From Macrostomum lignano (Eukaryota), in NCBI GenBank assembly GCA_002269645.1, contig NIVC01000728.1:186001-250000 (forward strand): a stretch of 64,000 nucleotides of DNA, in the 5' to 3' direction. A program made the translations under genes and the position numbers. The notes beneath the pieces are model-generated. The model saw only the letters and a list, made by a program, of their open reading frames with translations. It ran no database searches and had not been told where the DNA came from. Below, one piece after another: positions 1,939 through 62,863 of this stretch (the first letter of the stretch is position 1; each line of letters begins with the position of its first letter).

Positions 1939-18971
<17,033 letters not shown>

Positions 18972-23575: not shown

Positions 23576-23614
23576 TGGCCCTGGGCTCTAGCCAGATATT
23601 GCATTTAATACAGT

Positions 23615-26600: not shown

Positions 26601-27354
26601 TTCTCGCCACTGGCGTTACTGGTAAGAACATCATTTTCCATTCGGACAGCCAAGCTGCCTTGCACGCCATCAGTGGCTGCAGCACCAACTCTGCTACAGT
26701 CCTTGACTGTATCAAACTCCTCAATGTGTTGGGTTCCGCCAACAAAATTACCCTTAAGTGGGTTCCGGGGCATGTGGGGATCCGAGGAAATGAGTTGGCT
26801 GACACCCTTGCAAAAGTTGGTGCCTCCGGCTCCTCTCTCGGCCCCGAACCTCTTGTCCCGATCCTGGCTGTGTCATCGACTCGCGCATCAAAGCGTGGAT
26901 CAGGACTCAGCACCGCTCGACTTGGGCGAACCGCACGAACTGCAGGCAATCCAGAGGCGCTGTCCCTCAGCCCTCTCACCAGCTCCGGAAGCTCCTCTTG
27001 CGCCTCTCGCGCAGAGACATCCGGGCTGCCACCATGACCCTCTCTGGTCACGGCTGCTTCTCCAGGCACCAGTACCTGCAGGGCAACGCCACCAACGCCA
27101 CCTGTAGTTTCTGCAACTCAGGTGACGAAACCGCTGAGCATTTCGTCAGCATCTGTCCCGCCTTCACGCGGGCCAGACTCACTTACCTCGGGCCACACAC
27201 ATCTATTACTGAAGCGTGCAAACCCGAAAACTTTAATCAGCTCATGCGCTACCTTCGGGCCACCCGCAGGGCTGAACTCTCCTTTCCAGAGAGCACCATA
27301 GCTGCTGGCGACACTGGGGGACCTCCCTGGGCGGCGCCAACCCTCCGTCCATAG
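23615..27354 (+). CDS. LINE ORF2: APE endonuclease, reverse transcriptase, RNase H, CCHC finger; one stop and one frameshift
   Basis: QINLQH, IQEPW, GGDLNAHH, SDHC (APE). FKSPGPDG, FRPISL, LDIVGAFD, GYADD (RT). YTDGSK, NEVLAI, SDSQAAL, WVPGHVG.GNELAD (RNase H). CSFC..ETAEHFVSIC. TAA at 26030-26032 replaces the Tyr of ITYASVVW. Frameshift near 26862. Confidence 0.93.
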
Positions 27355-28770: not shown

Positions 28771-31700
28771 TCAGCCATCTTCATCAACTACTTTCGAGCT
28801 TCCAGTCATCGGGTAGCTCTCCGATGCTTTGTGGTTGCCGTCTCCATCCTCGGCTTCGGACGCGTTGGCGTTGCTCTTGTTGCCATGGCGACGCTTAGAC
28901 CAAGCCCGGTGGATCAGGTCCAATGGGAAAGTGTCCATTGGTCCCAGGGACAGCCAATGGCGGATGGTGTAGCGAGTCACGTGACCGGAATCCACCAACC
29001 GGTGATCGCGGATCGGAGTGATGGCCTTCGCCAGACTCTGGTTGAAGTTTTTTACAATTGTTGAGTCAGAGGTGTGTCAGGGAATTCAATCTAATAGCCT
29101 GTTGCACCTTCATGTAACTAGGTGTCTGTGGCGCCAAACAGGGTGTCAGAATCACCGAAACAACTTGTGACAGAAGCATTTGACTGGCCGGATGTCATGA
29201 CACCAAAACTGGGGTGTCAGGTCAGCAAAACTGGGGTGTCAGGTCAGCAAAACTGGAGTAACAGGTCACCAAAACTGGGGTGTCATTTCAACAAAACTAG
29301 AATGACAGGACACCAAAACTGGAAATTTCAGGACACCAAAACTGGAAATGTCAGGACACCAAAACTGGAATGACAGGACACCAAAACTGGAATGACAGGA
29401 CACCAAAACTGGAATGACAGGACACCAAAACTGGAATGACAGGACACCAAAACTGGAAATGTCAGGACACCAAAACTGGAATGACAGGACACCAAAACTG
29501 GAATGACAGGACACCAAAACTGGAATGACAGGACACCAAAACTGGAATGACAGGACACCAAAACTGGAAATGTCAGGACACCAAAACTGGAATGTCAGGA
29601 CACCAAAACTGGAAATATCAGGACACCAAAACTGGAATGACAGGACACCAAAACTAGAATGACAGGACACCAAAACTGGAATGTCAGGACACCAAAACTA
29701 GAATGACAGGACACCAAAACTGGAATAACAGGACACCAAAACTGGAATGACAGGACACCAAAACTGGAAATGTCAGGACACCAAAACTGGAATGACAGGA
29801 CACCAAAACTGGAATGACAGGACACCAAAACTGGGATTTCACGTCACCAAAAATGGGATTTCACGTCACCAAAAATGGGATTTCACGTCACCAAAAATGG
29901 GATTTCAGGACACCAAAACTGGGATTTCACGTCACCAAAAATGGGATTTCACGTCACCAAAAATGGGATTTCAGGACACCAAAACTGGAATGTCAGGACA
30001 CCAAAACTGGAATGTCAGGACACCAAAACTGGGATGTCAGGACACCAAAACTGACTATCAGGGGCATAAAAGTTGGTGTCAGACGCATTAAACTGTGCGT
30101 CAGAGGTACCAAGTGTGGGGGTTGGCTATTATCTGCAGGAGAGGCTTACTTTGTAGGACACGATAGCGTACACAGCCAAGGCCGGAATCATGCCCAGCTG
30201 GATCGCGCAGATGCCCCAGCCGATCAGTTTGCCTCCGGTGGGATAAAAATAGAAATAATTATTACCCTCGGTGCGATTAGCGAACAGCTCGGGATGGTAC
30301 TCGGTGTACTTGTAAAAGTACAGAAAACTCGACGAATCCATCAGTATGACAATGTTGAACACAATGATCACCTGAAATTTAAATAATGCTTTTTCAAATA
30401 ACAACATGTTTTCTGCTTTTGTTTGCATAGTGCTTCTGAATTTTGTACTTTTCTTTTCGTCTTAATGATAGTTTTGCGTAAACATACAGTAAATACGCTC
30501 GTAGGACCCTGAATTAGTACTTTTGATATTTAGTTAAGACCTATTGTGTTGTCCCTCACTCTCCCTCATTGTCCCTCACTCTCCCTCATTGTCTCTCACT
30601 CTCCCTCATTGTCCCTCACTCTCCCTCATTGTCTCTCACTCTCCCTCATTGTCCCTCACTCTCCCTCATTGTCCCTCACTCTCCCTCATTGTCTCTCACT
30701 CTCCCTCATTGTCCCTCACTCTCCCTCATTGTCTCTCACTCTCCCTCATTGTCCCTCACTCTCCCTCATTGTCCCTCACTCTCCCTCATTGTCTCTCACT
30801 CTCCCTCATTGTCCCTCACTCTCCCTCATTGTCCCTCACTCTCCCTCATTGTCTCTCACTCTCCCTCATTGTCCCTCACTCTCCCTCATTGTCTCTCACT
30901 CTCCCTCATTGTCCCTCACTCTCCCTCATTGTCCCTCACTCTCCCTCATTGTCTCTCACTCTCCCTCATTGTCCCTCACTCTCCCTTATTGTCCCTCACT
31001 CTCCCTTATTGTCCCTCACTCTCCCTTATTGTCCCTCACTCTCCCTCATTGTCCCTCACTCTCCCTCATTGTCCCTCACTCTCCCTCATTGTCCCTCACT
31101 CTCCCTCATTGTCCCTCACTCTCCCTCATTGTCCCTCACTCTCCCTCATTGTCCCTCACTCTCCTTCATTGTCCCTCACTCTCCCTCATTGTCCCTCACT
31201 CTCTTCCATTCTCTTACTCTCTGTCAATCTCCCCCACTCTCCTGCACTCTCATCCACTCTGTCACTCTTCTCCACTCTCCCTCACCCTTACTAACTCTCC
31301 TTTACTCTCCTTCACACCCTCACTTTCTCAGTGACTCACCAGAATAAAAACAGGCGAGATAAACTTCCAACACAGGCGCCAAAATATTCCGGGCGAAAAT
31401 CCCAGATTATCCTTAATATCTTTGCAGAACTGATCCAAGCCTTCGGCAAGGTTAGGAAAAATAGAATAAATTAGCTTCGTAAAATCAATAATGCTTAGTA
31501 GAATTGCTAATAGCATAAAAATGATTAAAGCACACTTACCGTAGAACCAAGAGACTGCAATTGCCTGAGAAAAAGCCACAACAATAATGGACAAACCAGC
31601 CGAGAAATTGTTCAATAAATTCCAGATGTACATGCCTCCCTGCGGAATGATCGCGTGACTTATAACGCAAATAGGTGCCTACATGATTCAAGGCCATTTC

Positions 31701-34700
31701 TCAAGGTCACTTTTTTTACTAGACTCATCCAGGTTGTACATCTATTCTCAGGAGGGGCGGGGGCAACAAGCTGTGTATTCCTCAAGGTCACTTGTCGCTG
31801 ATTGGCTAGATTATGCTAAATAGCAGATTCCTATGCAGGAGACCAACAAACCGTGCATTCCTCAAGGTCACTTGTCGCCGATTGGCTAGAATATTCCAAA
31901 TAGCATATTTCTATGCAGGGGACCAACAAACCGTGTATTCCTCAAGGTCACTTGTCGCCGATTGGCTAGAATATTCCAAATAGCATATTTCTATGCAGGG
32001 GACCAACAAACCGTGTATTCCTCAAGGTCACTTGTCGCCGATTGGATGGAATAATCCAAATAACAGGTTCCATGCAGGGGTCCAACAAACCGTGGATTAC
32101 TTAAGGTCATTTGTCTCCTGTTTCTCAGGGTCACTTGTCGTTGATTGATTCAATTGACGTTATAAAATATTGAATATACTCCAGTCATCGCGAAAAAAAT
32201 TAACCGCAGCCGGAATAGCAACTTACCTGGGTGCACAAAAAGATTGACATGAAGAAGGCGAACACGATCACACAGACGGTGAAAATCTCGCGAACATTTT
32301 TGTAGCGACGCAGAGGCTTCTCAATGAGATCGCCGACGCCAGTCAGTAGGCACTCCATGCCGCCCATCTGGGGAGAATTATGAAATTAATCTTGATTACT
32401 TGGGCTTTCAGTATATTCAATATGACAAAAATGAATTCAAATTGTTTAAATATGCGTATGCATTGTTTATCTCTTCAACAGGCCAATACACAAGCCTTAC
32501 AGTGACTTTCTAAATGTCAATGCAATTCTCAATTTAAGGCATTTTTAAGGTCCTCGCCTTCTCTTTAAATTGAAAGAAATATTTGCTAAAAGCATTTCAT
32601 CCTAGTGTTGAATGTTAAAAGGTTTGCAAGCGAGTGTGATATTGGCCTAGAAGCTTGAAATCTTCCACCTGACATTGGCAATAGTGCTTCTGCGACCTCT
32701 CCTTATATCCTCCACTTTAACAGACTACAATAGGCTGATGAAGTTCATCTGTCTGCCAGAGATTCTTGAGCGCGCGGATCCTTACCGCACTATCCAGCCC
32801 CAGCGTGATGAGCAGGGAGAAGAACAGGATTGACCATAGAGGCGCCACTGGCAGGGTGCCAATCGCTATCGGATAGACCTGGAAGACCAGACCGGGTCCT
32901 GTGGAAAAAAGTACAAAACAATTTTTTTTAATAATTGACTTCTCGTTCTGCGTTATCGTGCGACTCACACTCAGCCCCAAAGACACAGAGAGTGTACATG
33001 CCTGACGATAGGAAAGTCAAAGGGCCGCTGTACACCCTGTGTGAGCGAGTGTATGAGTGCGTGCCTGCGTACAGCATTGGGGCACTTGTGTGTGCTCAGG
33101 AGCCAGCGGAACGGGCAGCATTGCCGTCAGAGCTGGCTGTGGGACGTCAGGTAGCCTGCAGCATTCAATTTTAAGACCCGAAGTACTGTGTCTTATTTCA
33201 AGGTCAAACGTCGTTGATTGGCTGTAACCTTTCTTATCATATACATATTTATCTTGATCTCAAGGTCACTGGTTCACTGATTGGTTCAAATCAATTCTGC
33301 CTTGGCTTTATTCCTAAAATAGCAATTCTCAAGTACGGTATGCCCCAGATTAGATACACGTAACATAATTTTAGCAAGTTAATTACCCTCAGCAGTGACC
33401 TGATCCACCGGTTTCCCAGTGATCTCGGACATGTATCCCAGGTAGGAGAACACAACAAAACCGGCTAGGAAGCTGGCAGCCGCATTGGCGGCCGCAGTGA
33501 TGAGGCAGTCTCGGTAGCAGTTGTTCTTCGGCCGGCTGTAGCTGGCGTAGGACAGGTGGACGCCAAAGCCGGCGCCTGTTGAGTAGAACACCTGGATTGC
33601 CGCCTCGATCCAAGGCTGTGTGAGGAATTTCTCACTGCTTCATTTTGTTTTTAGTGACATCTTAGTGACCAGATGGAGATCAATGTACAGTTTGAGAAAA
33701 GAGAATATGTGAAAAGGGTAGGGATGAGAGAGGGCAGAAAAGAAAGGTGAGAAGAGAGGGGAGAAGATAATAAAAAATTATTATAATTGATGCATCTTTC
33801 TAGGGTTTGGTGAATATTAATAGGGTTTGGTGAATCTTCTTAGGGTTTGGTGAATCTTTCTAGGGTTTGGTGAATATTTTTAGGGGTTGGTGAATCTTCT
33901 TAGGGTTTGGTGAATCTTTCTAGGGTTTTGTGAATCTTTCTAGGGTTTTGTGAATCTTCTTAGGGTTTGGTGAATCTTCTTAGGGTCGGTGAACCTTTGT
34001 TGGTTCGGTGAATCTTTTTAGTTTTCTTGAACCATTTAAGAAGTTGATGAATATCTTCGGGTTCGGGAATATTTTTAAACTTTGTGAATCTATGAGGCTT
34101 GAGAAGCATTTGAGGGTTGGTGGAGGATTCAAATTTAAAGTTTCAAGTCCTCAAGCAGCATCAATTCTTTAGTAAGTCCCCCAATGAACTCACATCGATA
34201 GAGTTCAACTTGGACAGGTCCGGGTTAATAAAGTACTTTATGCCCTTGCTGGCACCGGGCAGTCTGGCCCCATTGACGAGCAGGATGGACAACAGGATGT
34301 AAGGCATTGTGGCGGTGATGTACACCACTTTGCCGGAGGTCTTCACTCCCTTCCACAGGGAGAAGTACAAGCAGGTGAACACGATCATGCAGCAGATCAC
34401 CAGCAGCAGGCGCGGCTGGCCCAGGTTGCTCAGTCCGACGCTCTCGTGGATGGCGAGGACCCCGCGCCTGAGAAATCGAGATGCGAATTCCGGGAGGTTG
34501 AGAGCTGGTTGACAATATAATGTTGGTTATGAATGTACATTGCTGCAGGTCACTTGCACTAATAAGTTTGACCTGTTTAATATGAAAATCAAGAGGTGAC
34601 CCACTGAATGATCAGGAGGTGACCCACTGGATGATCAGGAGGTGACCCACTGGAGGATTAGGAGGTGACACACTGGATGATCAGGAGGTGACACACTGGA

Positions 34701-36310
34701 TGATCAGGAGGTGACACACTGGATTATCAGGAGGTGACACACTGGATGATCAGATGACCCACTAGAGGATCAGGTGACCCACTGGAGGATCAGGAGGTGA
34801 CCCATTGGATGATCAGATGACCCACTAGAGGATCAGGTGACCCACTGGAGGATCAGGTGACCCACTGGAGGATCAGGAGGTGACCCACTGGATGATCAGA
34901 TGACCCACTAGAGGATCAGGTGACCCACTGGAGGATCAGGTGACCCACTGGATGATCAGGTGACCCACTAGAGGATCAGGTGACCCACTGGAGGATCAGG
35001 TGACCCACTGGATAATCAGGTGACCCACTAGAGGATCAGGTGACCCACTAGAGGATCAGGTGACAGAGTCTGTTCAACAGCAAGACTGACAACTCACTCA
35101 AAGAATTCCTCAGATGCGAGAACGTACTTGGCGCTCCGATTCTGCATAGTAAGGTTCTTGTACTGCTCAACCGTGACGCACCACTCCGTATTAAATGCGT
35201 TGTCGCACTTCATCCAGGGCAGAGTGGTCGTTGAGAATGAGTTGAATAAGAACAAGAAGCACCAAGCTATGATGACGTTGTAGTAGAATGCAACCAGATA
35301 GGTCATGAGGTTCTGGGCCAGACCGATGCCCCTGGCCAGAGGGCAGATGTCCCACACTCGGATGGGGCCGTGCTGGTTCACCTGGCCCAGCACCAGCTCC
35401 ATGTAGAACAGGGGCACCGCCTGTGAATGGAGGGAGTGAGGCGAGTTGTTGATACAACGGTAGCTTCAAGTGGTCCATGAGTGAGGGTAGTGAAGGGAGC
35501 GAGGGTAGTGAAGGGAGTGAAAGAAGTGAAGGGAGTGAGGGTAGTGAAGGGAGCGAGGGTAGTGAAGGGAGTGAAAGAAGTGAAGGGAGTGAGGGTAGTG
35601 AAGGAAGTGAGGGGAGTGAAAGGAGTGAAGGGAATGAAGGGAGTGAGGGTAGTGAGGGAAGGGATTGTGAAGGGATTGAAGGGAGTGAAGGGAGTGGAAG
35701 GAGTGAAGGGATTGAGGGTAGTGAAGGAAGTGAAGGGAGTGGAGGGAGTGAAGGGAGTGAATGGAGTGAATGGAGTGGAAGGAGTGAAGGGACTGAAGGG
35801 AGTGAAGGGACTGAAGGGAGTGAAGGAGTGAAGGGAGTGAAGGGAGTGAAGTGAGTGTAGGGAGTGAAGGGAGAGGAAGGAGTGAATGCAGTGAAGGGAG
35901 TGAAGGGAGGGAAGGGAGTGAAGGGAGGGAAGGGAGTGAAGAGAGGGAAGGGAGTGAACAGATCAGTGCAAGATTCAAAGTCGAGCGGTTGCCACCTGAA
36001 AGATGTTCATGAGGAAGTAGGGCAGCAGGAAGGCCCCGCCGCCGTATTTATAGCACAGGTAGGGGAAGCGCCACACGTTTGCCAAATCCACGGCAAAGCC
36101 AATGATTGACAGGAGAAAGTCGATCTTCGTGCCCCAGCTTTCTCGCTCGTCAACGGCGACTTCGACTTCGAATTCGGGGTCGTCTTGGGCGACGTTCGAC
36201 GCAGTGGAATTGCCGCCAACGCCGCCACTCGACAAAGGGGCCAGGGGGGATCTCTCCTCGGCGGCCGGGGAGTCCGCCGATGCGGCCTCTGGCGAACTTT
36301 GATCGCTCAT
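28771..36310 (-). CDS. SLC6A2/3-like: SLC6 Na+/Cl- dependent monoamine transporter, dopamine/noradrenaline/octopamine type, 10 coding exons
   Basis: Exons 36310-35996, 35420-35098, 34467-34194, 33615-33387, 32898-32786, 32367-32227, 31639-31540, 31440-31340, 30371-30150, 29037-28771, phases compatible. Motifs [33 protein letters not shown] (TM1 Asp), [39 protein letters not shown]. Confidence 0.95.
29200..30056. repeat. 22-23-bp minisatellite (CAGGACACCAAAACTGGAATGA)
   Basis: Seen directly. Confidence 0.95.
30545..31200. repeat. 20-bp minisatellite (CACTCTCCCTCATTGTCCCT)
   Basis: Seen directly. Confidence 0.95.
31775..32150. repeat. 80-bp tandem repeat (~4.5 copies) carrying TCAAGGTCA and GATTGGCT
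   Basis: Units start at 31781, 31861, 31941, 32021 and 32101. Confidence 0.9.
32970..33130 (+). mobile_element. SINE A2 fragment
   Basis: AGTGTACATGCCTGACGATAGGAAAGTCAAAGGGCCGCTGTACAC...TCAGGAGCCAGCGGAACGGGC. Confidence 0.65.
33795..34030. repeat. 20-bp minisatellite (TAGGGTTTGGTGAATCTTCT)
   Basis: Seen directly. Confidence 0.9.
34595..35066. repeat. 20-23-bp minisatellite (GGTGACCCACTGGAGGATCA)
   Basis: Seen directly. Confidence 0.92.
35478..35958. repeat. 9-bp purine-rich repeat (GAAGGGAGT)
   Basis: Seen directly. Confidence 0.92.
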
Positions 36311-36329
36311 CTGTGCCTGGCGGGCGTTG

Positions 36330-36640
36330 AGTGTGCCATTTTTATTGGAAATGTGCCATTTTTATGGGAAATGCGCCATTTTTTATAGGAAATGTGCCAT
36401 TTTTTATTGGAAATGTGCCATTTTTATGGGAAATGCGCCATTTTTAATAGGAAATGTACCATTTTATGGGAAATTTGCAATTTTTATGGGAACTGTGCAA
36501 TTTTAATGGGAAATATGCCATATTTATGAGAAATGCGACAATTTTTAGGGGAAATGCGCTACTTCTAGACGAAATGCGCCATTTTTATAGGAAATGTGCC
36601 ACTTCAAAGGGAAATGTGCCATTTTATGGGAAATATTCCT
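36330..36640. repeat. ~22-bp degenerate minisatellite (GGAAATG[CT]GCCATTTTTAT)
   Basis: Seen directly, immediately upstream of the SLC6 start exon. Confidence 0.85.
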
Positions 36641-37069
36641 TTTTATATAGAAATTATTGATTTTTTCGGATGTCGCAGATAAGACCTGGTGCTTCAACTT
36701 GACATTACCCAAGCTGATAAACACGAGTCACATCATCTTAGTAGGCCAGAACACAGTGATTTAAAAATACTGCACTTACAGAATGCTTGAGAAGTTCCAA
36801 TACATTTTTTGTCGATCTGATTAAGTGTTGCACAATGGCAGTAGCAGACAACCAGTACACTATATATATAACTGACGAAAAATCTAGCACTGTTCTCAGG
36901 TCAAGTGGCTTTAACGCTAAGGTGCTGCTCTTTTGTCAGTTGTCTGAATGATTGATTGAATTATTAGACTTAAAAGTTGCAATTCTAATTGACAGCTGAG
37001 CAATTTTGAGCCGATTGCATTTTTAATTTAATGAATTCTGCATTGGGGAAAATTTTGGATCTGAAGTTG

Positions 37070-38340
37070 TGGGATTGTGAAGCTTGAGGATTGTGAAGCT
37101 TGAGGATTGTGAAGCTTGAGGATTGTGAATCTCGGGGATTGTGAATCTTGGTGATTGTGAATCTTGGTGATTGTGAATCTTAGAGATTGTGAATCTTAGA
37201 GATTGTAAATCTTGGTGATTGTGAATCTTGGTGATTGTGAATCTTGGTGATTGTGAATCTCGGGGATTGTGAATCTTGGGGATTGTGAAGCTTGAGGATT
37301 CTGAAGCTTGGGGATTCTGAATCTTGGGGATTGTGAAGCTTGGGGATTGTGAATCTTGGTGATTGTGAAGCTTGGGGATTGTGAATCTCGGGGATTGTGA
37401 ATCTTGGGGATTGTGAAGCTTGAGGATTCTGAAGCTTGGGGATTGTGAATCTTGGTGATTGTGAATCTTAGAGATTGTGAATCTTAGAGATTGTAAATCT
37501 TGGTGATTGTGAATCTTGGTGATTGTGAATCTTGGTGATTGTGAATCTTGCGGATTGTGAATCTTGCGGATTGTGAATCTTGAGGATTGTGAATCTTAGA
37601 GATTGTAAATCTTGGTGATTGTGAATCTTGAGGATTGTGAAGCTTGCGGATTGTGAAGCTTGAGGATTGTGAAGCTTGAGGATTGTGAAGCTTGAGGATT
37701 GTGAATCTTAGAGATTGTGAATCTTAGAGATTGTGAATCTTGGTGATTGTGAATCTTGGTGATTGTGAATCTCGGGGATTGTGAATCTTGGGGATTGTGA
37801 AGCTTGAGGATTCTGAAGCTTGGGGATTGTGAATCTTGGTGATTGTGAATCTTAGAGATTGTGAATCTTAGAGATTGTAAATCTTGGTGATTGTGAATCT
37901 TGTGATTGTGAATCTTGGTGATTGTGAATCTTGCGGATTGTGAATCTTGCGGATTGTGAATCTTGAGGATTGTGAATCTTAGAGATTGTAAATCTTGGTG
38001 ATTGTGAATCTTGAGGATTGTGAAGCTTGCGGATTGTGAAGCTTGAGGATTGTGAAGCTTGAGGATTGTGAAGCTTGAGGATTGTGAATCTTAGAGATTG
38101 TAAATCTTGGTGATTGTGAATCTTGGTGATTGTGAATCTTGGTGATTGTGAATCTCGGGGATTGTGAATCTTGGGGATTGTGAAGCTTGAGGATTCTGAA
38201 GCTTGGGGATTCTGAATCTTGGGGATTGTGAAGCTTGGGGATTGTGAATCTTGGTGATTGTGAAGCTTGGGGATTGTGAATCTTGGTGATTGTGAAGCTT
38301 GGGGATTGTGAAGCTTGGGGATTGTGAAGCTGGGGAATTG
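37070..38340. repeat. 16-bp satellite, left block (GATTGTGAATCTTGGT / GATTGTGAAGCTTGAG)
   Basis: Seen directly, with higher-order internal duplications. Confidence 0.95.
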
Positions 38341-39094
38341 TAAAAAGCACCCTAATATATCAAAGGTTATGTCTCATGGGTTTTAACTCACCAAAACTGG
38401 TAGCTATGAGCCCAAACCATTCGCACTTTGTCAAATTGTCTTAGTGCACTAACATGTTCTGCAGCTGGCTTCTTTCCAAGAAGCAGAAGACACACACTGC
38501 AGCACACAGAGAGCCAGCTGGTGTTTGACTATGCAATCGGTAGAGGGTGCAGATAAAAGCCAATGAAGGGACTCACCTGTGCTGCGTTCAACCGATTATT
38601 GTGAACAAAGGGGGCCAAGAGGCCACAAGCAGCTAACCAGAGACAATAAGAAATGAAAGTTGAACCAAGAAATACAAGAGCTGGCCTTAAATATTTGCTG
38701 TGAGGGTGAGAACTGGCTGCCCTCTGCCGCGCCAACGTCTCTCTCTGTCTGTCAGGCACTTCAGGCATCCAATGCAGGCATGAAAGCCTGACAGAGCTCT
38801 GCAGCCCTGAAGCACTCAATCATTTTTCTTGTAAAAAAACATCGGCTCTCTTTGGGCCCTCCTACTCTCGGGCGCCTCATTCTCATGGCGGAGGTGAAGC
38901 GAAATCCGAGATTGACAGGTCCATGAGGACCTGGTGGATTCGTTCGCTCTCTACTCCTCGATCTTGTCCACTTTCAGTCAGATGCAGGTTGTTACCTGCC
39001 TCAAATACGGATTCGAAAATTGATATCTTTTATGCAATCTTTTCACAGATACGTAAAAATTTCAATATCCGAAAATCTAGAAAAAAGTCTAGAT

Positions 39095-40335
39095 TGGGGA
39101 TTGTGAAGCCTGGGGATTGTAAAGCTTGGGGTTGGGGATTGTGAAGCTTGAGGATTGTGAAGCTTAAGGATTGTGAAAGTTAGGGATTGTGAAGCTTGGG
39201 GATTGTGAAAGTTAGGGATTGTGAAGCTTGGGGATTGTGAAGCTTGTGGATTGTGAAGCTTGGGGTTGGAGATTGTGAAGCTTGGGGATTGTGAAGCTTG
39301 GGGTTGGGGATTGTAAAGCTTGGGGATTGTGAAAGTTAGGGATTGTGAAGCTTGGGGATTGTGAAGCTTGTGGATTGTGAAGCTTGGGGTTGGAGATTGT
39401 GAAGCTTGGGGATTGTGAAGCTTGGGGTTGGGGATTGTAAGGCTTGGGGATTGTGAAAGTTAGGGATTGTGAAGCTTGGGGATTGTGAAGCTTGGGGATT
39501 GTGAAGCTTGGGGATTGTGAAGCTTAAGGATTGTGAAGCATGGGGATTGTGAAGCTTGGGGATTGTGAAGCTTGGGGATTGTGAAGCTTGGGGATTGTGA
39601 AGCTGGGAGATTGTGAAGCTGGAAGATTGTGAAGCTGGGAGATTGTGAAGCTTAAGGATTGTGAAGCTTAAGGATTGTGAAGCTTTAGGATTGTGAAGCT
39701 TGGGGATTGTGAAGCTTAAGGATTGTGAAGCTTAAGGATTGTGAAGCTTAAAGATTGTGAAGCTGGAAGATTGTGAAGCTGGGAGATTGTGAAGCTTAAG
39801 GATTGTGAAGCTTAAGGATTGTGAAGCTTTAGGATTGTGAAGCTTGGGGATTGTGAAGCTTAAGGATTGTGAAGCTTAAGGATTGTGAAGCTTAAAGATT
39901 GTGAAGCTTAAAGATTGTGAAGCTTGGGGATTGTGAAGCTTGAGGATTGTGAAGCTTAAGGATTGTGAAGCTTGGGGATTGTGAAGCTTAAGGATTGTGA
40001 AGCTTGGAGATTGTGAAGCTGGGAGATTGTGAAGCTTGGGGATTGTGAAGCTTGGGGTATTGTGAAGCTTGGGGATTGTGAAGCTTAGGGTTGGGGATTG
40101 TGAAGCTGGGAGATTGTGAAGCTTGGGAATTGTGAAGCTTGGTGATTGTGAAGCTTGGGGATTGTGAAGCTTGGGGTATTGTGAAGCTTGGGGATTGTGA
40201 AGCTTGGGGTTGGGGATTGTGAAGCTTGGGGATTGTGAAGCTTAAGGATCGTGAAGCTTAAGGATTGTGAAGCTTAAGGATTTTGAAGCTTAAGGATTGT
40301 GAAGCTTAAGGATTGTGAAGCTTAAGGATTGTGAA
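39095..40335. repeat. 16-bp satellite, right block (GATTGTGAAGCTTGGG)
   Basis: Same unit and orientation as 37070-38340. Confidence 0.95.
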
Positions 40336-40344
40336 GCAACGGAA

Positions 40345-41451: not shown

Positions 41452-41625
41452 TTCATTGAAAGTTAATCAGCTTGATCAGGTAAAACCGATCAATTGGAAA
41501 GTCCCCATTCGCTGCGCCAATGAAGTTCTGTAGCCAGAATACTTGATTGTCTTTTAACCAGAGAGAAAGAGAGCAGAGCCGGTCTGTGAAAGACTGCAGC
41601 TTCTTGTATTTGCGAGTTTTCGGAT

Positions 41626-41870
41626 TGATTGGCTGTATTGCCTATGGCCGAGTGCAGCTCTGTGGCAGTGGCTTTGATTGGCTGTATTGTCTATGGCCGA
41701 GTGCAGCTCTGTGGCAGTGGCTTTGATTGGCTGTATTGTCTATGGCCGAGTGCAGCTCTGTGGCAGTGGCTTTGATTGGCTGTATTGTCTATGGCCGAGT
41801 GCAGCTCTGTGGCAGTGGCTTTGATTGGCTGTATTGTCTATGGCCGAGTGCAGCTCTGTGGCAGTGGTTG
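41626..41870. repeat. 49-bp tandem repeat (5 copies) containing GATTGGCTG
   Basis: Seen directly. Confidence 0.92.
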
Positions 41871-42309: not shown

Positions 42310-42610
42310 CCCCAGCAACAATAGCGAGCCCCTAACAACCAATAGCCAGACCCTAGCAACAGTAGTCAGGCCCTAGCAGCAGTAGCCAGACCCTAGCAAC
42401 CATTAGCCAGACCCTAGCAACCAATAGCCAGTCCCTAGCAACAACAGCCAGGCCCTAGCAACAATAGCCAGTCCCTAGCAACCAATAGCCAGTTCCTCGC
42501 AACAATAGCCTGTCCCTAGCAACAGTAGCCAGTCCCTAGCAACAGTAGCCAGTCCCTAGCAACAGTAGCCAGGCCCTAGCAACAGTAGCCAGCCCCCAGC
42601 AACAATAGTA
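42310..42610. repeat. ~20-bp minisatellite (CCCTAGCAACAGTAGCCAGT)
   Basis: Seen directly, immediately 3' of the rhomboid stop codon. Confidence 0.88.
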
Positions 42611-42618
42611 GTCCTCAG

Positions 42619-44471
42619 CTAGCCAGCATGCCGAGTCCCCCCTCCGCAGGCCAGTCCGCCAGCAGCCGAATACCATCCGGTGTTGAAGACATTCCACAGA
42701 ATCGCAAATGCGGCCAAGCCGGCAAAACCTGCTAGACTGACTCTCAGCAGGCAGCGCTGGCACCAGCGTCTCCGCTGTCTGCCGCCATTTTCAGCGCTGT
42801 CCTCGTCACCTTCGCCGTCGTCATCCAGGTCGAAGCTGAGCAGCTGGGTGCCGACCAGACAGCCCCAGGCCAGGCCGGCAGGCTGAGCACAGTAGGAGCT
42901 CAGACTCAGCCAATGCTTGTCCCCAGCCAGTATGGCAAACCGGCGCCAGTGCCGCTGGTAAATCGCAACGGCAAAATCGGCGTAAGTGAAGCCGACCAGC
43001 AGAGCCAGGCGCAGCATTGAGGAGGCCAACAATTGGCGAAGTTTTCCTCCGCCAGTTTTCAAGTTGCCGCCTCCTGATTCTGTTGTTGGCGCCGTGATTT
43101 GGTGCCACTCGGCGCTTAACTGGCCCCAGTTGGCCAGCGCCAGGCCGATGTGCGCCCCAACTAGCGCGTAGGTGGCGCCGGCGGCGCCAATCAGAACGGC
43201 GCTTGGCTCGGCGACGGAGGAGAGCAGAGAGCCGAGCAGGACGCCGCCTAACATGACGGCGCCTACGCGAAGGCCGCCGTGGGCCAGCTGCAGAGGCAGG
43301 CCCAGCAGCAGCAGCATCAGCGAGTTGAACACCAGATGGTGCCAGCCGTCGTGCAGTAGAGAGTAGGTTGCGAACCGCCACACCTGGGTGTTGATCGAAT
43401 GCATTTGTAGCCGCTACCCCCTCTGAATACCCTTCAGTGAATTCCGCTACCCCTCTGAATACCCTTCAGTAAATGCCGCCACCCTCAGAGGGTCTTTAAC
43501 CTCCGTAATCGTCAGCAGCTCCTCACCTCGTGCCGCCGGGCTGGGCAGAAGGCCAGCGGGCTGCTGTAGGGCAGGCCGGACGCCCAGCCGACCCGGTTCC
43601 AGGCGGGCCCGGCGTTGAGCTGCACCGCGCTGACGCAGAAGCCGATCCAAACAGCCAGCAGAGCCAGCGGGATGAACACGGGCGGCGGGTGGCATCTGTA
43701 CAGCTCGATGTACGCCTCTTCGGGCACCTCGCCGGGTTCATCGTCGTCATCGAAGTCTCGCTCGTCAGCAACCAGAACTGACCCGCCGCCGCCGCCGCCA
43801 CCGCCGTTTCCCCGCTGTTGCTGTCGTTGTCGTCGACGTCGTCGAACTACTCGACGTTGTCGGAGGCGCCGTTCCGCCGCGGCGACCCCGGGATCGGCCG
43901 CGCGGACCAGCCGGTTCACCAGCCGCTTGGCCGGCGCCACCTCCGACCGCATCCGGTAGGTCATGCCGGCGTAGAAATCCGGCCAGCTGGTCCGGCCGCT
44001 CCTGTCCGTGTCCGCCCGCCGAAGCAGCCGAATCAGCTTGCGGCGTCGGCCGCCGGCGGCGCCGACCCGATTGAACAGGTCGAGGAACAGCCGGTTTGGC
44101 ATGCCGCCAGCCTCCGAGTAGGGCTGGAACTGCCTGCGGTAGCGCCGAGTCAGCCACTGACGGTAAGCCAGCTCGCTGCTCTGTGCTGGCTGAGGTGCTG
44201 GAAGCGACTGGGGAGGCGGCGGCGGCAAGGGCAAGGCGGCGCAGAGGCCGCCTCCTGGCGGCTGCGGCTTCCACAGCAGGCGTCGGCAGTCGAGCAGGAC
44301 GGGTGTACCCGACGAAGATGCCGTCGGCGCCGCATCGCCGACGGTTGAGCTCCAGTTTGAGCAGCCGGGAAACGAGAATGTCAAGGGCTGCTCAATGGCG
44401 CTGTCGAGCATAGCGCCGCTGTTGTCCGGGTCTGGCGGCTGCTGCTGATCGGCAGGCAGAGAATGCGCCAT
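42619..44471 (-). CDS. RHBDL3-like: RHBDL1/3 (ventrhoid)-type rhomboid with EF-hand, predicted inactive pseudoprotease, 2 exons
   Basis: Exons 44471-43527 and 43383-42619 (phase 0). EF-hand-like ADTDRSGRTSWPDF, YRCHPPPVFI, EVWRFATYSLLHDGWHHLVFN. TM4 reads LIGAAGATYAL and TM6 reads SYCAQPAGLAWG. Confidence 0.92.
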
Positions 44472-45240: not shown

Positions 45241-46812
45241 TCACAGCAGCAGCAGTAGCAGGACGCAGGCTGTCAGAACGGCCAGGGCAGCGAAGGAGGC
45301 GAAAATCCAGGTCGCTGTCTGATCTCCGCTGGTCTGGTTGCAGCGGGTCACATCCGGCTGTTTGGAAAGTGAAGATTTGTAGATTTACAGAGATAAAACT
45401 GAAATCTGTAACTTCTGCCGAAAGTAGTAAAATAGGAATCGTTGGTTTGAGGGAAAATAAATCAGAGAGCTGGTTTTCGAAGTTTTATTACTTTGAGAAT
45501 AGTCAGCTATTCTACTTATTAAGTAGCAATACAAGCCTATTAGGCCATTTTAGAGAATAAATTGGGTTGGGTTTTTTAGTTAGAGGCAGGGGCTGTGAGC
45601 ACCCTGGCGCACTTTAAGCGACATTGTCACACAACCGGCGAGAGGCATTGCTGCCAATTCCGCCGACTCCCCTGAGCAGGCACACAAGCGCGCGGATACG
45701 TACGCAGGCACACACTCACACAGGAGTGTACAGCGGCCCAAACTTTATTTATCATTAGGCATGTACACTTCACTGTGCCTTGGGGGTTGGCCCTCAAGGC
45801 TGTTAATTGCACGAGCAGAGCCAACAAGCCGAGATTCCAATTTAGCCCCAAATTAATGCGACTGCACTTGCAATCGAGCCTGGGCCGCCAGCACGTCAGA
45901 GCGCCGCGCCAGATCACTGCGGCTACGGCCCATTCAAAGTTAAGGTTTCCGCAAATTGATGCGATATCCGACCTGCGGCCAGTTATACTCATACCGCAGA
46001 CCTCCGAGCACACATTCACAGAGGGTGTACAGCAGCCCTGCACACTCTGCGCCTTCAAGGGGAGTGCCCCCCTGCCAAGCGTTCTTTGCAGCAATTCTGC
46101 CCCCCCCATTTCAAGGGTATGAAAAAGCTGTAATGATTTATAGTCCCACGAAAATAAACTCAAAACAATACTCAACGATAATCCATCCACCCTGTTCGGT
46201 AAGCCAGGTGCACAGACGCGTAGCAACGAACGCACCGAATGCGTCCACAATTTTTTGCGCATAGTCCAGGTGGCCTTGGCTGGCGCAGTCGGCGGCAAAG
46301 GCGCCCGCCATGGCGAACAGGGCGACAACTTTGCCCCAGTGGATGCTGTCGCGGCACAGCTGGTCGCAGAACATCACAAAAGTCCGTCTAGAGACTTCCT
46401 CGGAGTGCATGGCCAAGTTCAGCTGACGGTGCACATTATTGAACAGGTCCGGGTACATCGTCTCCAGCTCTTCGCCAACTAGGCGAAGCTCTTCGCCGAC
46501 TTCGCTGTACTCGGCTGGCGGGCCGAGGGCATCCAGCTGGCGCTGGGTGAGGGCGCCGCTCCGTCTGAGCCGATGATTGACGTATTCGAGGCACAGGGCC
46601 TTGCCTTCGGCCACCAGGTCATCTGGGTTGGGTCCGGCTTGCGAGGCTTGGGACGAGTCCTGTTGTTGCTGGGGGCCGCTGGCTCGGCCTGTGCTCGGCG
46701 AAGATGGACGGCGATGGTGGTGGTGGTGAAGGTAAGACGGTTGCGAGAAGCGGAGGCTGCGCTGACGTTGACTGATGGCGCTATGGACGCTGGAGATTCG
46801 CCGGTGAGGCAT
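45241..46812 (-). CDS. BOK: Bcl-2 family protein BOK, 2 exons
   Basis: MPHRRISSV, BH4 LVAEGKALCLEYV, BH3 LRLVGEELE, PDLFNNVHRQL, BH1 HWGKVVALF, BH2 WLTEQGGW. The last exon 45357-45241 encodes the hydrophobic tail WIFASFAALAVLTACVLLLLLL*. The exon 1 donor (~46178) is weak. Confidence 0.9.
45572..45931 (-). mobile_element. SINE family A copy in the BOK intron
   Basis: Homologous to 2395-2755 and 41111-41451. Confidence 0.87.
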
Positions 46813-57555: not shown

Positions 57556-60500
57556 CTAAGCAATTGTCTGGATGAAGTTTTCAATAGAGGCGCACACTTG
57601 ATCAGCAAACTGTGGCTGCTGCTGTTCGGCAGTGGAATTAGCAGTCCGCAGTCCGGCCAGACAGTCGCTCAGTCGAGTGTAGGCAGAGTCCAGCTGCTGC
57701 CTGGTCAGACTAGCCGTCCGACTGACCAGCTGGTTCAGCAGGTTCTGCAGCCGGTTTCTAACCACCATGGCATCCGGCTGACGATACGGAGAGCCACCGG
57801 CAGCTGACGATGACGGCTGAGCAGCCGGCGGCTGCTGCTGCTGTGGAGGGCTGGCAGAAGCTGACAAAGACCGTCTAGTAGTGGGAGTTGCAGCAGCAGC
57901 AGCGCTTGCTGTCTCAGCTTCAGCATCATTTGTCGCCGAAGTGGCAACAGTGGCGGATCTGCGGCTGTACCGATCGGCGCGAGACACTCCGCTACCACTG
58001 TTGCTGCCGCTCAAGCAGCCGTTGCCATGCTGTTGCCGGGTTGGTCCGTTAGTAGACGGGTGAGTTGAAAGCGAGGATTTCTTTGTCGCAGCAGTTTGGC
58101 CGGTAGCGGCGGCGGCAGGTGCACCGTCGTCGCGTCGACGATCGCGAATTTGTTTACAGTCGTCCTCGAAGTCGGAGTCCATCTCCGCTTTCACGATGGC
58201 CTGGGCGACGTCGCGTAGGGCGCAGGCGCGGTGTCGGATGGCTACGGACTCGTCGTCGGTGACCGGGTTGTACTCCAAGGCGTTGCGAGAGATCAAGTCT
58301 ACATCGGCTAGAAAGTCCTCGGCGCAGCAGTAGTCGCCGCGATCGATCTTGTCCATCACGGTGGCCAGGTCCATGGGATTCTTGATGATGTCGTAATAGT
58401 CAGCGACGTCTGTCACCGGCTTAGCGAATACGAAGAATCGGCGGTCTCTGAGGGGTCAAGGAGGCAAATGGATTATGGGCTTGAAGGTTCAGGATGATGG
58501 ATCAGATGGTTCAGGATGGAAGATCTGAAGGTTCAGGGTGGTGGATCTGAAGGTTCAGGCTGATGGATCTGAAGGTTCAGGATGGCGGATCTGAAGGTTC
58601 AGGCTGATGGATCTGAAGGTTCAGGATGGCGGATTTGAAGATTCAGGATGGTGGATCTGAAGGTTCAGGCTGATGGATCTGAAGGTTCAGGATGGCGGAT
58701 TTGAAGATTCAGGATGGTGGATCTGAAGGTTCAGGCTGATGGATCTGAAGGTTCAGGATGGCGGATCTGAAGGTTCAGGCTGATGGATCTGAAGGTTCAG
58801 GATGGCGGATCTGAAGGTTCAGGCTGATGGATCTGAAGGTTCAGGATGGCGGATTTGAAGATTCAGGATGGTGGATCTGAAGGTTCAGGCTGATGGATCT
58901 GAAGGTTCAGGATGGCGGATCTGAAGGTTCTGGAAGATGCAAGATGATTGCTCATGATGGTATAATTGTAGCACACTTTAGTTTCAGAATTATGGTGGTT
59001 CTAAAAGTTTTAGAATATTGTGAAATTCAAAGGATCAAAATGAGAGGAGCCATAGTCTAAAAGCACGCAAGACGGTTTCACCCGACTCACCTAGCCAGCT
59101 TGTTGCAAGTATCGCGCAGAAATATTCTCAACTCTCGCAGTTGCCCCTCCTCTCTACGGGCGAGTCGCTTGGCTTCAGCCGGGGTCAGCGCGGGCGGCGG
59201 ACTGGCCGGAGCCAGCGGCAGCGGCGGCAGCGACTCGGCTGGCGGAAGTTCTCCGCCGCTGCCGCAGCCGACACCGCCGTCGGCATCATCCAGCACCGTG
59301 GCAGCATTGAGCACCATATCGCTGAAGAAGGCCCGTCGCTGAGCGTCAGTTGGACTTGTCACCCGGACGGTGACCAGGTCCTCAGACGAGCAGTCCAGCC
59401 AGTCGGGTGGCTGAAATGAATCGCCGATTTCGTCAGCGTCCAGATTGATGCACTCGCGAGTCATGAGCACCAGCAGCGGCAGCGAAGGATCGAAGTCACG
59501 AAGGCTTGCCAGCAGGCAGCGACGCACCGTGTCCGACAGGCCGCCAGTTGACGAGTCGCCGAACAGCGAGTCGCAAGCCGGCACGTACAAGGCGGCTGGG
59601 GCGGCGCGACGGAGCTCGCGAAACAGATCGGCCACGGCCTCTTCCGGACAGCGGACACTGGCCGAAGCGTACAGAGCGGCCGGATCTAGGCAGTGAGCCG
59701 GCAAGGATTCCATTCGGTGCAGAATGGCCGGGCCCAGATACTTGGCTAGACAGTCGCCAGTCTGTCCAAGCAGCATGACTAGCCGGCGTTGGCTTCCACT
59801 CGGCCGGCCGGCCGGCCTGGCGGCCAGCAGCTGACGAAGCCGGTCAGCAGCGTCCGCGGCCGCATCCGAATAGAGCGGATTCAAATAGGCCGGGGGCGGC
59901 CGGGCCACGGCCGGCGTGGATCGCTGTCCGGCTGGCCGGACTCGGACAAGAGCGGCGGTCAGATCTCCGGCGCTAACTGAGATTCTGGCATTATCCAGCA
60001 GCAGTTTATCCTTGCTGTAGTAGATCTGCGGATAAGCTCGGCGAAGCGCGGACAGGCCGGCCTCGGTGCTCAAGGCTTTCAGATCCGCGCCGCAATAGCC
60101 GGCTGTAGACTCGGCCACCGAGCGCAGCGTCTCCTCGGACAGTTGAAAGTGTCCGAGATGTAGACGAAGAATTTCCAAACGGGCTGCTTCGTTAGGCAGC
60201 GAGAAACGAAGCTCCCGATCGAATCGGCCGGGACGGCGCAGCGCGGGATCGATGCTGTCCAGCCGGTTGGTGGCACCGATCACGATCACCTGGGGCAGCC
60301 ATAGCAACCATTATGAATTATGAAGAATGATGAAAAATAAATACTACTGATGTACCTGTCAATAGCAACCAACACTAGCATTTACCCAGCGCCCATAGCA
60401 ACCAAGACTAAGATGTACTTAGCGCCCATAGCAACCAAGACTAAGATGTACTTAGCGCCCATAGCAACCAACACTAAGATGTACTTAGCGCCCATAGCAA

Positions 60501-62863
60501 CCAACACTAAGATGTACTCAGTGCCTATAGCAACCAACACTAAGATGTACTCAGCGCCCATAGCAACCAACACTAAGATGTACTCAGTGCCCATAGCAAC
60601 CAACACTAAGATGTACTTAGTGCCCATAGCAACCAACAATAGGATGTACTTAGCGCCCATAGCAACCAACACTAAGATGTACTTAGCGCCCATAGCAACC
60701 AACACTAAGATGTACTCAGTGCCTATAGCAACCAACACTAAGATGTACTCAGCGTCCATAGCAACCAACACTAAGATGTACTCAGTGCCCATAGCAACCA
60801 ACAATAGGATGTACTTAGCGCCCATAGCAACCAACAATAGGATGTACTTAGCGCCCATAGCAACCAACACTAAGATGTACTCAGCGCCCATAGCAACCAA
60901 CACTAAGATGTACTCAGTGCCTATAGCAACCAACACTAAGATGTACTCAGCGCCCATAGCAACCAACACTAAGGTGTACTCAGCGACTATAGCAACCAAA
61001 AACAGTGACGTATATAGCGCCCATAGAAACCAACAATAGGATGTACTTAGCGACCATAGCAACCAATAAAACTAGATAATTGTGCTCAATGCATCCATCA
61101 GTAACAACACAGAGGAATATAACAGCAATAATCTAATATATTCTCAATATATTCGAAAATAAAAGACACACCTCCCCGCGAGCATCCAAGCCGTCCATCA
61201 GCGCCAGCAGAGTGCTCACAATGGAACTGTGAATCTGATCCTGTCTAGTCGATCTTACTGGCGCCAAGCCGTCAATCTCGTCAAAGAAGATAATACTAGG
61301 CCGCATCTGATAGGCCTGATCAAACAGCAGCCTGAGCTGTCTCTCGCTCTCTCCAACCCATTTGCTCAAACAGTCGGCGCCTTTGCGCATAAAAAAGGCA
61401 ACTTTGCGCCTGGCGTCGGCCCGGCCGCATTCGTTAGCCAGAGCCCTGGCAACCAGAGTCTTGCCGCAGCCAGGCGGCCCGTAGAACAGTACGCCGCGGG
61501 GCGGATCGACTCTCAAATGGGCGAACACCTCCGGGTACAGCATAGGAAATACTAGCATCTCTTTCAGCGAGCGCAGATGGTCGCCGAGGCCGCCAATCGA
61601 TTCGAATGTGACGCCGGTGTCGATCGACATCGGATCGACGTCGGCCAGACTGGCGCCAATCTTTGACCGGTCCCGACGGATGCCCCGTTCCGCATCCTGC
61701 ATGGCCAGATTCATCGGCAGACAGCGCAGTCTAGCCTTGGCCATGCTGCGATTCTTTCGACGCAAAAATCGACGCTCATCGTTGGCATTGTCGTCGGCTG
61801 AGTCAGAGCCGGAGGACGACGACGAGGACGACTCGGTGCTAGACGAGCCGTGCCGATTTCTTTGAAGCGATCGGCGACGTCGGCGACAAGCTCGACCGGA
61901 CGACGAGCGCTGGCGACGCCGGTAAGACGCTTCCCGGCTGCTGCCGACGCCGCCGACTCCGCCTCCGCGACTCCGACGTGGCATGGCTTCGTAGGCCGAC
62001 GTCTGGTAGACGTCGGTGCGCCGCCTGTGCTGTCTGAGCTGGTACGGCCGACGCTGCTGGCCGCCGCCGCCTCCCCCGGCAGCGTCCTCCTCGGTGGCGC
62101 CCTCTTCCTCGTCGTCTTCTTCTTCCTCTGCCTCTCTGTTGCGGCGTCGACCCTTGGCGCTGACTTGATTCTCGACGGCAACTAGTTGGCCGTACATGTC
62201 GCGGATGAACTTCTTGCGCGGCCGTTTCACCCGGGTGTACATATCGGAGAACTGCTGCTGCTGCTGCTCGTCTGTCGCATTCTTCGACACCGTCGCCGCC
62301 TCAGCTGCCTGCTCTGCATCATCCTCCTCGTCATCTTCGTCGACGTTTTCATCAACGTCACTCTGTTGAAGGTGCCGACGCGGCCGCTTCTGCTGTCGGC
62401 TGCGCCGGCGCGACAGTCGTTCAACGACGCGTCGAGGCTGCCGGCTACGTCTATCTAAAGACTCTCCATCGTCGTCTTCGCTGTGACCCAGCCCTCCGTT
62501 GCCAACCAATTCGTGCTCATCCTCGTCATCTTCATCCTCCTCATCCTCTGTGCTGACGGCGTATCGCAGGCGACGCTTCCGACTGTCGCCAATATGAGCA
62601 CCATTCTCACTGGCGGCTAGTCTTCTCGGGCGACCATCTGGCCTGGAGTCATAGTCCTGCTGCTGCTGGTGATGATGGCTATGATGGTGGTGATGGTTAT
62701 GATGATGAGGCTGCTGCAGAGGCTGCAACTGACGCTGCGGTGATGTGGCACTGCCGCCAGATTTTCGATTGTTAAACACTGGAGAGGCGCTGGCATTGCT
62801 GCCGGCGCCGCAGCCTCTGCTGCCACTTATCTCGAGGGCATCGGATCGCCTCGTGTGTACCAT
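57556..62863 (-). CDS. ATAD2: ATAD2/Yta7-family AAA+ ATPase with bromodomain, 3 exons
   Basis: Exons 62863-61172, 60292-59091, 58447-57556, phases compatible. Walker A GPPGCGKT, FFMRKGADCLSKWVGESERQLRLLF, Walker B FFDEIDGLAP, PALRRPGRFDRE, degenerate second AAA, bromodomain DYYDIIKNPMDL...NALEYN. Confidence 0.97.
58478..58930. repeat. 22-bp minisatellite (GGATCTGAAGGTTCAGG+5), alternating variants
   Basis: Seen directly. Confidence 0.93.
60345..61060. repeat. 33-bp minisatellite (CCCATAGCAACCAACACTAAGATGTACTTAGCG)
   Basis: Seen directly. It fills ATAD2 intron 1. Confidence 0.95.

Follow-up and report, generated by a model that had tools for sequence, protein, structure and literature searches.

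Rhomboid-like proteins that do not cleave, the iRhoms and Derlins among them, are important regulators of signaling and protein quality control. All rhomboid pseudoproteases known to us belong to ancient families; sporadic inactive rhomboids of the secretase type were reportedly recognized as a category by Lemberg and Freeman in 2007. The activity of rhomboid pseudoproteases depends on a WR motif, a GxxxG motif in transmembrane helix 6 (TM6), and a membrane-thinning fold (review PMC12615303; iRhom work PMC3149277), and the same two motifs are needed by the Derlin/Dfm1 pseudoproteases (review PMC12615303). The iRhoms keep the His of TM6 (GPxx-H), and inactive rhomboids that fall outside the named families form a recognized category (PMC7065720). 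Here we describe a gene of the flatworm Macrostomum lignano that lies in a stretch of 64,000 nucleotides (nt) of assembly GCA_002269645.1 (contig NIVC01000728.1, positions 186,001 to 250,000), hereafter called the window. Its product, the window protein, is a rhomboid of the secretase type (6+1 TM), probably from the RHBDL group that bears an EF-hand in flatworms and other lophotrochozoans, and it is very probably an independently derived RHBDL homolog that is not an iRhom and that lacks the catalytic Ser-His dyad.

The gene is read on the minus strand from 44471 to 42619 of the window, as two exons that encode 569 amino acids (Table 1). A first-pass annotation, made from the letters of the window, had proposed that both catalytic residues are replaced, Ser by Ala and His by Gln, and both replacements were borne out at the codons that it named (43180-43182, GCC; 42883-42885, CAG). 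Ala383, in 'LIGAAGATYALVGAH', falls on the catalytic Ser in an alignment to GlpG. Gln482, in 'SSYCAQPAGLAWG', occupies the site of the catalytic His; the next residue is Pro483, at a position that holds Ile, Leu, or Val in active relatives. In a BLASTP alignment to the active Lingula RHBDL2, GAAG pairs with GASG and CAQPAG with AAHIGG. Every one of the 94 active relatives in a 103-sequence alignment has Ser in the first of these columns and His in the second (94 of 94, or 100%, in each case), and a dyad residue is missing in 10 of 191 homologs: the window protein, eight tapeworm sequences that form one clade from seven cyclophyllidean genera, and one annelid sequence. As read from its sequence, the window protein cannot use a Ser-His dyad for intramembrane proteolysis.

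One might imagine from what is left that the protein still cleaves, with some other nucleophile or base close to the active site, since the TM2 His and Asn, which help to form the oxyanion hole in GlpG, are kept and Thr386 and His472 lie nearby. However, neither TM4 around position 383 nor TM6 has a Ser, Cys, or His that could stand in; Thr386 lies one full turn of the helix off, and His472 is placed before TM6, in the L5 loop, by the AlphaFold2 model. We know of no rhomboid that works without the Ser-His dyad, and regard continued proteolysis by this route as highly improbable.

A single base separates the two codons from one for Ser (TCC) and one for His (CAC/CAT), respectively, as would be expected if both changes were assembly or consensus errors in a gene that really encodes Ser and His. 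What bears on this explanation is UniProt entry A0A1I8JQ84, also from M. lignano, which was the sole close relative found among approximately 15 billion proteins by two word-index searches and an exhaustive phmmer search of 1.84 billion representatives. It was compared with the window by a purpose-written frameshift-aware protein-to-DNA alignment (a check that is not fully independent, as the two M. lignano assemblies may overlap in sequencing data), which paired 496 codons at 82% identity with 47 frameshifts and with the same intron removed. A0A1I8JQ84 is the same locus, taken from an older, poorer, indel-ridden assembly. It has 'HWLSLSSYCAQ' in frame, which gives Gln at 482, and the off-frame translations of the entry and of the window agree in full over 'SDWRRRRHLRASWG', so that the first base of codon 383 is G and every Ser codon is excluded. 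Moreover, the neighboring changes G385A, Pro483, and E347Q have diverged as well and are unexplained by single-base errors. An assembly error at the two codons thus appears unlikely, and a Ser-His gene hidden behind such errors is a very improbable account of the data.

A0A1I8JQ84 was also considered as a decayed paralog and rejected: there are 47 indels against approximately 4% substitutions over 1.7 kb, and indels nearly as frequent as substitutions point to long-read assembly error rather than to pseudogene decay. The public model of the rhomboid locus is thus chimeric and frameshifted; it fuses the exons of an SLC6 transporter (36.3-35.3 kb of the window, downstream) onto the C-terminus and carries the name 'Protein kinase domain-containing protein'.

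The gene had been described as an intact open reading frame (ORF). The frame is indeed open, but the span is not one ORF, consisting instead of two exons around a 143-nt GT..AG intron. Splicing joins ...CPARRHE to VWRFATY... and restores the family consensus 'RR.E.WRF' (...ARRHE/VWRF...) with no gap or loss in the alignments, whereas the unspliced frame of exon 1 meets a stop four codons further on. The 143 nt were considered as a disrupting insertion, which was rejected in view of the strong donor and acceptor, the exact restoration of the consensus, and the same junction in the UniProt model. Exon 1 opens with an ATG at 44471 (context CACCATGG) and encodes a disordered N-terminus (residues 1-98), an N-domain with the conserved motif 'YRQW..F.PY..GG.P' and an EF-hand remnant, a linker, CHPPP-TM1, and most of loop L1; exon 2, with 254 codons, encodes the WR motif, TM2 to TM7, and a C-terminal tail. 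Other ORFs overlap the gene on either strand; none of them matched a family above threshold, and they are a consequence of the high GC.

The intron contains a 32-nt tandem repeat (2.3 copies), no other copy of which was found within the 64-kb window, and has AGGTG at both boundaries. Its position matches none of the four introns common to the cestode orthologs; M. lignano genes have approximately five introns each on average. Because the single intron stands at a non-conserved position and cestodes have four, we considered a retrocopy origin, and recent intron gain, intron turnover, or a retrocopy history are all possible.

Several kinds of search bear on the family of the protein. The Pfam rhomboid family (PF01694) matches with an E value of 1.7e-19 and 70.8 bits against a cut-off of 22.6, over profile positions 2-99; the match ends at residue 410 because the TM4-TM5 loop is lengthened, and no other Pfam family matched the window protein at E<=1. 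The AlphaFold2 model shows seven TM helices (those encoded by exon 2 at residues 329-350, 352-373, 382-399, 437-460, 477-502, and 515-557) and an N-domain that is likewise helical, with a predicted local distance difference test (pLDDT) score that averages 65 and reaches 80-89 in the TM core. The top Foldseek matches in the PDB are iRhom1/2 and GlpG, with a TM-score of up to 0.64 on GlpG. To our knowledge no 7-TM rhomboid-like protein other than the iRhoms has a solved structure, so their place among the best matches is expected.

The phmmer search returned 1450 matches (E<=0.001); among the best 150, those fetched or named by their source are all of RHBDL or rho type, and every named match in a profile search is RHBDL2. 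Among full-length relatives, the best are flatworm proteins that carry the annotation 'Rhomboid-related protein 2' or 'stem cell tumor'. Strong matches to the N-domain (residues 96-200) come solely from neodermatan proteins, and a weaker version of its motif in Lingula and in one further active protein suggests that the architecture predates the flatworms. With hidden Markov models (HMMs) of groups, the core scores 178.4 for the active neodermatan proteins, 178.7 for other lophotrochozoans, 147 for RHBDL1/3-like proteins, and 119 for vertebrate RHBDL2; the earlier label 'RHBDL1/3-type' was therefore too specific, as that group scores 147 against approximately 178 for the lophotrochozoan and flatworm RHBDLs. 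M. lignano has at least two active paralogs, A0A1I8GEZ3 and A0A1I8H955. The top-scoring representative match was a 916-amino-acid 'Protein rhomboid' model of the fly Pseudolycoriella hygida (KAJ6641132.1) with four tandem rhomboid domains; either the annotation has merged a tandem array of genes, or the multi-domain protein is real.

The dyad has also been lost in tapeworms. Both Ser and His are present in the neodermatans Cichlidogyrus (a monogenean, Ciccas_000729), Spirometra (a basal cestode), Mesocestoides corti, and one further relative. The His is missing in all cyclophyllideans examined (Taenia, two species; Hydatigena; Echinococcus; Hymenolepis, two species; Rodentolepis; and Anoplocephala), and in Taenia, Hydatigena, and Anoplocephala the Ser is missing too; named dyad-less members include Taenia solium KAL5965265.1 and a protein of Echinococcus granulosus. 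Ser was lost twice within this His-less clade, which is intact in its seven cyclophyllidean genera (eight sequences). In a neighbor-joining tree, the dead cestodes form a clade with 100% bootstrap, the active Mesocestoides protein is their sister with 93%, and the window protein joins the dead cestodes in 0%. This absence of grouping, together with the active sister, indicates that the Macrostomum and tapeworm losses were independent. The proposal of an independently evolved loss thus stands, both in this respect and in that the protein lies apart from the known pseudoprotease families.

Exact exon maps and coding sequences were recovered for T. solium (locus L001, 1501-4261), E. granulosus (L002, 1501-5369), and M. 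corti (L003, 1501-6602). Between Taenia and Echinococcus, the nonsynonymous rate (dN) is 0.076 and the synonymous rate (dS) 0.58, a dN/dS of 0.13, which implies that the dyad-less tapeworm form has been kept by purifying selection. The first-pass annotation had held that the recognized inactive rhomboids have other architectures. A precedent exists, however: an EF-hand member of family S54 without an active site had been noted in T. solium in a protease survey of 2014, in which the active site was not located and a sequencing error was suspected (PMC4070553). The pattern across species now shows that the loss in T. solium is real, and the tapeworm clade corrects that remark.

Two side observations concern individual models. 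That of T. solium (L001 2653-3509, exons 3-4) has 16 additional residues in TM2, 'QQAAQKMTTTLSTTTIGQ', where exons meet in phase 1, unlike those of Echinococcus and Mesocestoides, which splice in phase 0 between HQ and GIWH. The donor in T. solium was probably mis-called, which would also explain why this model seems to lack the first TM2 His. The second concerns an annelid RHBDL-type rhomboid, Dimorphilus gyrociliatus CAD5123641.1, which reads GSAGG (Ser to Ala) and keeps the TM6 His; it may be another sporadic inactivation.

The rest of the window protein has not diverged evenly. The first-pass annotation had listed the WR motif, HxxxxHxxxN, and PPP-TM1 as retained, and all were found in the alignment (W317 and R318; H326, H331, and N335; CHPPP). 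The columns of the TM6 glycines G485, G489, and G493 are 98-100% conserved, and all three residues are present. Altogether, 36 of 42 columns that are highly conserved in active relatives (>=85%) are kept. When columns are ranked by falling conservation, agreement with the consensus is 0.86/0.51/0.41/0.11 for the window protein, compared with a mean of 0.94/0.70/0.48/0.29 for active relatives. This steep drop with column conservation suggests that decay was not uniform and that structural Gly, Pro, Trp, and Arg positions were spared.

The balance of the evidence tips slightly toward a functional pseudoprotease that binds transmembrane clients and does not cleave them. The protein would still be made and would work much as functional rhomboid pseudoproteases do, which likewise keep WR, GxxxG in TM6, and the region of TM2 and TM5 through which transmembrane helices can enter. 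With WR and GxxxG in place, it would bind type-I transmembrane clients without cutting them, for which the iRhom mode of action serves as a model. Candidate clients are the substrates of the active paralogs A0A1I8GEZ3 and A0A1I8H955, such as EGF-like ligands; binding could hold them back, re-route them, or send them to degradation, and would thereby alter their trafficking, stability, or availability.

Several observations weigh against a working protein, and would fit a gene under relaxed constraint: a redundant RHBDL paralog (active paralogs exist in A0A1I8GEZ3 and A0A1I8H955) that has lost catalysis and is drifting toward a pseudogene, with its frame still open as little time has passed. 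In the neighbor-joining tree the window protein sits on a long branch, in no grouping above 19% bootstrap. Of the 42 highly conserved positions, six differ from the consensus, whereas active relatives have a median of one such change; the four affected besides the dyad are E347Q, Y359M, G385A, and Q339L. Low-complexity insertions interrupt the linker (pLDDT approximately 49-60 in the AlphaFold2 model at residues 221-250), the TM4-TM5 loop, and the TM6-TM7 loop. The EF-hand is degenerate. In a canonical loop of 12 residues, positions 1, 3, 5, and 12 supply ligands, position 6 is Gly, position 8 is hydrophobic, and position 12 is Glu; the loop DTDRSGRTSWPD keeps D1, D3, S5, and G6, but position 8 is Thr, position 11 Pro, and position 12 Asp. 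The Pfam EF-hand models give no match to the window protein at E<=1, whereas five orthologs match at 1e-5 to 3e-3. Of the earlier statement that the EF-hand is retained, a recognizable remnant is thus what survives; the Ca2+-sensitive role suggested with it is doubtful, and control by calcium through this site has probably been lost.

Further points on the same side concern the history and expression of the gene. Because each dyad change is one base away from a codon for Ser or His, the loss could be recent. The word-index searches and the phmmer search of 1.84 billion representatives yielded no other Macrostomum ortholog or intact close relative, there was no close relative or transcript-derived protein in approximately 15 billion sequences apart from A0A1I8JQ84, and exact look-up of both genomic ORFs in public assemblies gave no match. 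A literature search found no paper linking Macrostomum with rhomboids, and the supplementary files of the transcriptome paper on neoblasts and germline of M. lignano make no mention of one. Comparison with A0A1I8JQ84 by codon position left only nine usable substitutions (4/0/5 at positions 1/2/3), too few to inform. Finally, the Mlig_3_7 assembly contains extensive duplicated blocks (PMC5730564).

Other properties of the locus speak against drift toward a pseudogene. There is no in-frame stop in 569 codons, where shuffling predicts 12.8 (0 of 2000 shuffles were stop-free), and the splice sites are intact and canonical. Variable sites are saturated, yet the structural Gly, Pro, Trp, and Arg residues have been preserved. 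The coding sequence has a GC content of 66.5%, with 75% at third codon positions (GC3), compared with 52% for the intron and 45% for the flanking DNA; neighboring AAA/bromodomain ORFs have a GC3 of 63-69%. The contrast between a GC3 of 75% and 45-52% in non-coding surroundings would fade under neutral drift, which argues that the gene is alive. In addition, the dead tapeworm ortholog has been kept by selection. We therefore treat relaxed constraint as a possibility to be taken seriously, though not as a probable one, and continue to lean toward a non-cleaving, client-binding protein.

One might go further and suggest, as a rather doubtful extension, that the EF-hand RHBDL group of flatworms has a conserved role that is free of proteolysis, such as the binding, trafficking, or gating of transmembrane clients; such a role would account for the loss of the dyad twice, independently in Macrostomum and in cyclophyllideans, while the protein was kept. 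On that view, pseudoproteases would have arisen from secretase rhomboids a second time, much as the iRhoms did but lacking the iRhom homology domain (IRHD). An RHBDL inactivated independently, and perhaps recently, and close in sequence to active paralogs, together with a tapeworm clade under selection, would offer a natural experiment on what the rhomboid fold does after cleavage is lost. Dyad loss recurs within one protein group, selection is measurable in its tapeworm branch, and the organism is tractable: M. lignano is amenable to RNA interference and transgenesis. Should the Macrostomum gene turn out to be unexpressed or drifting, the case would reduce to ordinary paralog decay.

Coordinates are collected in Table 1, together with those of the other features of the window. 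From high to low coordinates, the genes on the minus strand are the ATAD2-like gene, the Bcl-2 family ORF, the rhomboid gene, and the SLC6 transporter. The 20-nt repeat array probably lies in the 3' untranslated region of the rhomboid gene. Strand-composition skews were observed at 8001-10000 (GC +0.39, AT +0.45), 30001-32000 (GC -0.36), and 34001-40000 (GC +0.34 to +0.43), and these blocks are probably satellite or simple-repeat blocks. An Rfam scan of the window gave no match.

Table 1. Features of the rhomboid gene and of its surroundings, in positions of the window (aa, amino acids; LINE, long interspersed nuclear element; LTR, long terminal repeat)
Feature	Position	Strand	Basis or remark
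Exon 1, codons 1-315	43527..44471	-	ORF reading; N-domain homology to neodermatan orthologs (E 1e-15 to 1e-6); collinear alignments
Intron, 143 nt, GAG/GTGAGG ... CACCCAG/G	43384..43526	-	Splicing restores family consensus; same junction in A0A1I8JQ84
Exon 2, codons 316-569 and TAG stop (42621-42619)	42619..43383	-	PF01694 match; AlphaFold2 helices
EF-hand-like loop D154-T-D-R-S-G-R-T-S-W-P-D165	43977..44012	-	Homologous to 'DANRDGRITYEQ' / 'DKNRDGRITFEE' of orthologs; degenerate
Low-complexity R/Q/G/D-rich linker, aa 201-250	43722..43871	-	Stands where neodermatans have 'LEPDGVWPTS'
C260-H-P-P-P264 directly before TM1, kept	43680..43694	-	Alignments
WR motif, loop L1 (W317, R318), kept	43375..43380	-	99% conserved columns
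TM2 H326-x4-H331-x3-N335, kept; pairs with GlpG 'HFSLMHILFN'	43324..43353	-	GlpG and family alignments
Gln347 at Glu site invariant in 94/94 active relatives	43288..43290	-	Third loss at an invariant site
Ala383 (GCC) at catalytic Ser site; TM4 GxSG reads GAAG	43180..43182	-	GlpG, Lingula, and 103-sequence alignments
Lengthened TM4-TM5 loop, aa 404-432, 'QLSAEWHQITAPTTESGGGNLKTGGGKLRQ'	43033..43119	-	Alignments; lineage-specific
Gln482 (CAG) at catalytic His site, TM6	42883..42885	-	Lingula and 103-sequence alignments; 'YCAQ' also in A0A1I8JQ84
TM6 A481-Q-P-A-G485-L-A-W-G489-C-L-V-G493	42850..42888	-	GxxxGxxxG kept around lost His
Acidic/basic TM6-TM7 insertion, aa 499-522, 'DLDDDGEGDEDSAENGGRQRRR'	42763..42834	-	Absent from all relatives aligned
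20-nt tandem repeat, ~15 copies	42310..42608	.	Begins 11 nt past rhomboid stop
Near-perfect 49-mer tandem array, x5	41625-41867		Downstream of rhomboid gene
16-mer tandem array, x20	40000-40337		Downstream of rhomboid gene
ATAD2-like gene	57556-62863	-	Three large ORFs; AAA ATPase, AAA-lid, bromodomain; very long exons
Bcl-2 family ORF	46138-46812	-	PF00452, E 7e-24; directly upstream of rhomboid gene
SLC6 (sodium:neurotransmitter symporter) exons	35328-36289	-	
Non-LTR retrotransposon (LINE)	22443-27107	+	APE-reverse transcriptase and RNase H ORFs intact
LINE ORF, 805 aa, APE endonuclease and reverse transcriptase	23615-26032	+	Intact
LINE RNase H ORF	26153-27037	+	

Among known rhomboid systems, the iRhoms (RHBDF1/2 and Drosophila rhomboid-5) resemble the window protein in being dead derivatives of the secretase type with seven TMs and with WR and GxxxG kept. 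iRhoms have GPxG, whereas the window protein has G381-A-A-G384, with no Pro before the Ser site; they have a large IRHD between TM1 and TM2, whereas its TM1-TM2 loop is approximately 43 residues long (TM1 ends near 285 and TM2 starts near 329), WR helix included. The cytoplasmic N-terminal domain of iRhoms is absent from the window protein, the N-domain of which is homologous to that of flatworm RHBDLs, and the TM6 His that iRhoms keep is lost. Judged by sequence, the window protein thus fails every iRhom-defining feature tested, in agreement with the first-pass annotation, which had excluded an iRhom on the lack of GPxG and IRHD. Derlin, UBAC2, TMEM115, and RHBDD2/3 share a non-catalytic rhomboid fold with it but are distant in sequence: their Pfam families gave no match to the window protein in the Pfam scan, and the close homologs that were read are of RHBDL type, so that the separation from the Derlin and UBAC2 types likewise holds.

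The active RHBDLs (Lingula anatina XP_013403003.1, vertebrate RHBDL2, A0A1I8GEZ3, and A0A1I8H955) have the same 6+1 TM arrangement, WR, HxxxxHxxxN, TM4 GxxG, and TM6 GxxxG, and BLASTP gives 35% identity over 310 residues to the Lingula protein. Relative to them, the window protein shows Ser to Ala, His to Gln, and Glu347 to Gln, and longer TM4-TM5 and TM6-TM7 loops. Nearest of all are the EF-hand RHBDLs of neodermatans, which are its best BLAST matches for N-domain and core alike and are collinear with it through the 'EEYRQW..F.PY..GG.P' N-domain, the EF-hand site, CxPPP-TM1, WR, TM2 to TM7, and 'WN(I/V)F..G(Y/W)'; the Taenia ortholog is 32% identical over 520 columns, and Taenia and Echinococcus, like the window protein, have Pro after the former His. 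The window protein lacks the 'LEPDGVWPTS' linker of neodermatan RHBDLs and a detectable EF-hand, bears insertions, and has a single intron at another position, against four shared by the cestode genes. The window protein adds to the known phenomenon of rhomboid pseudoproteases and is not a new kind.

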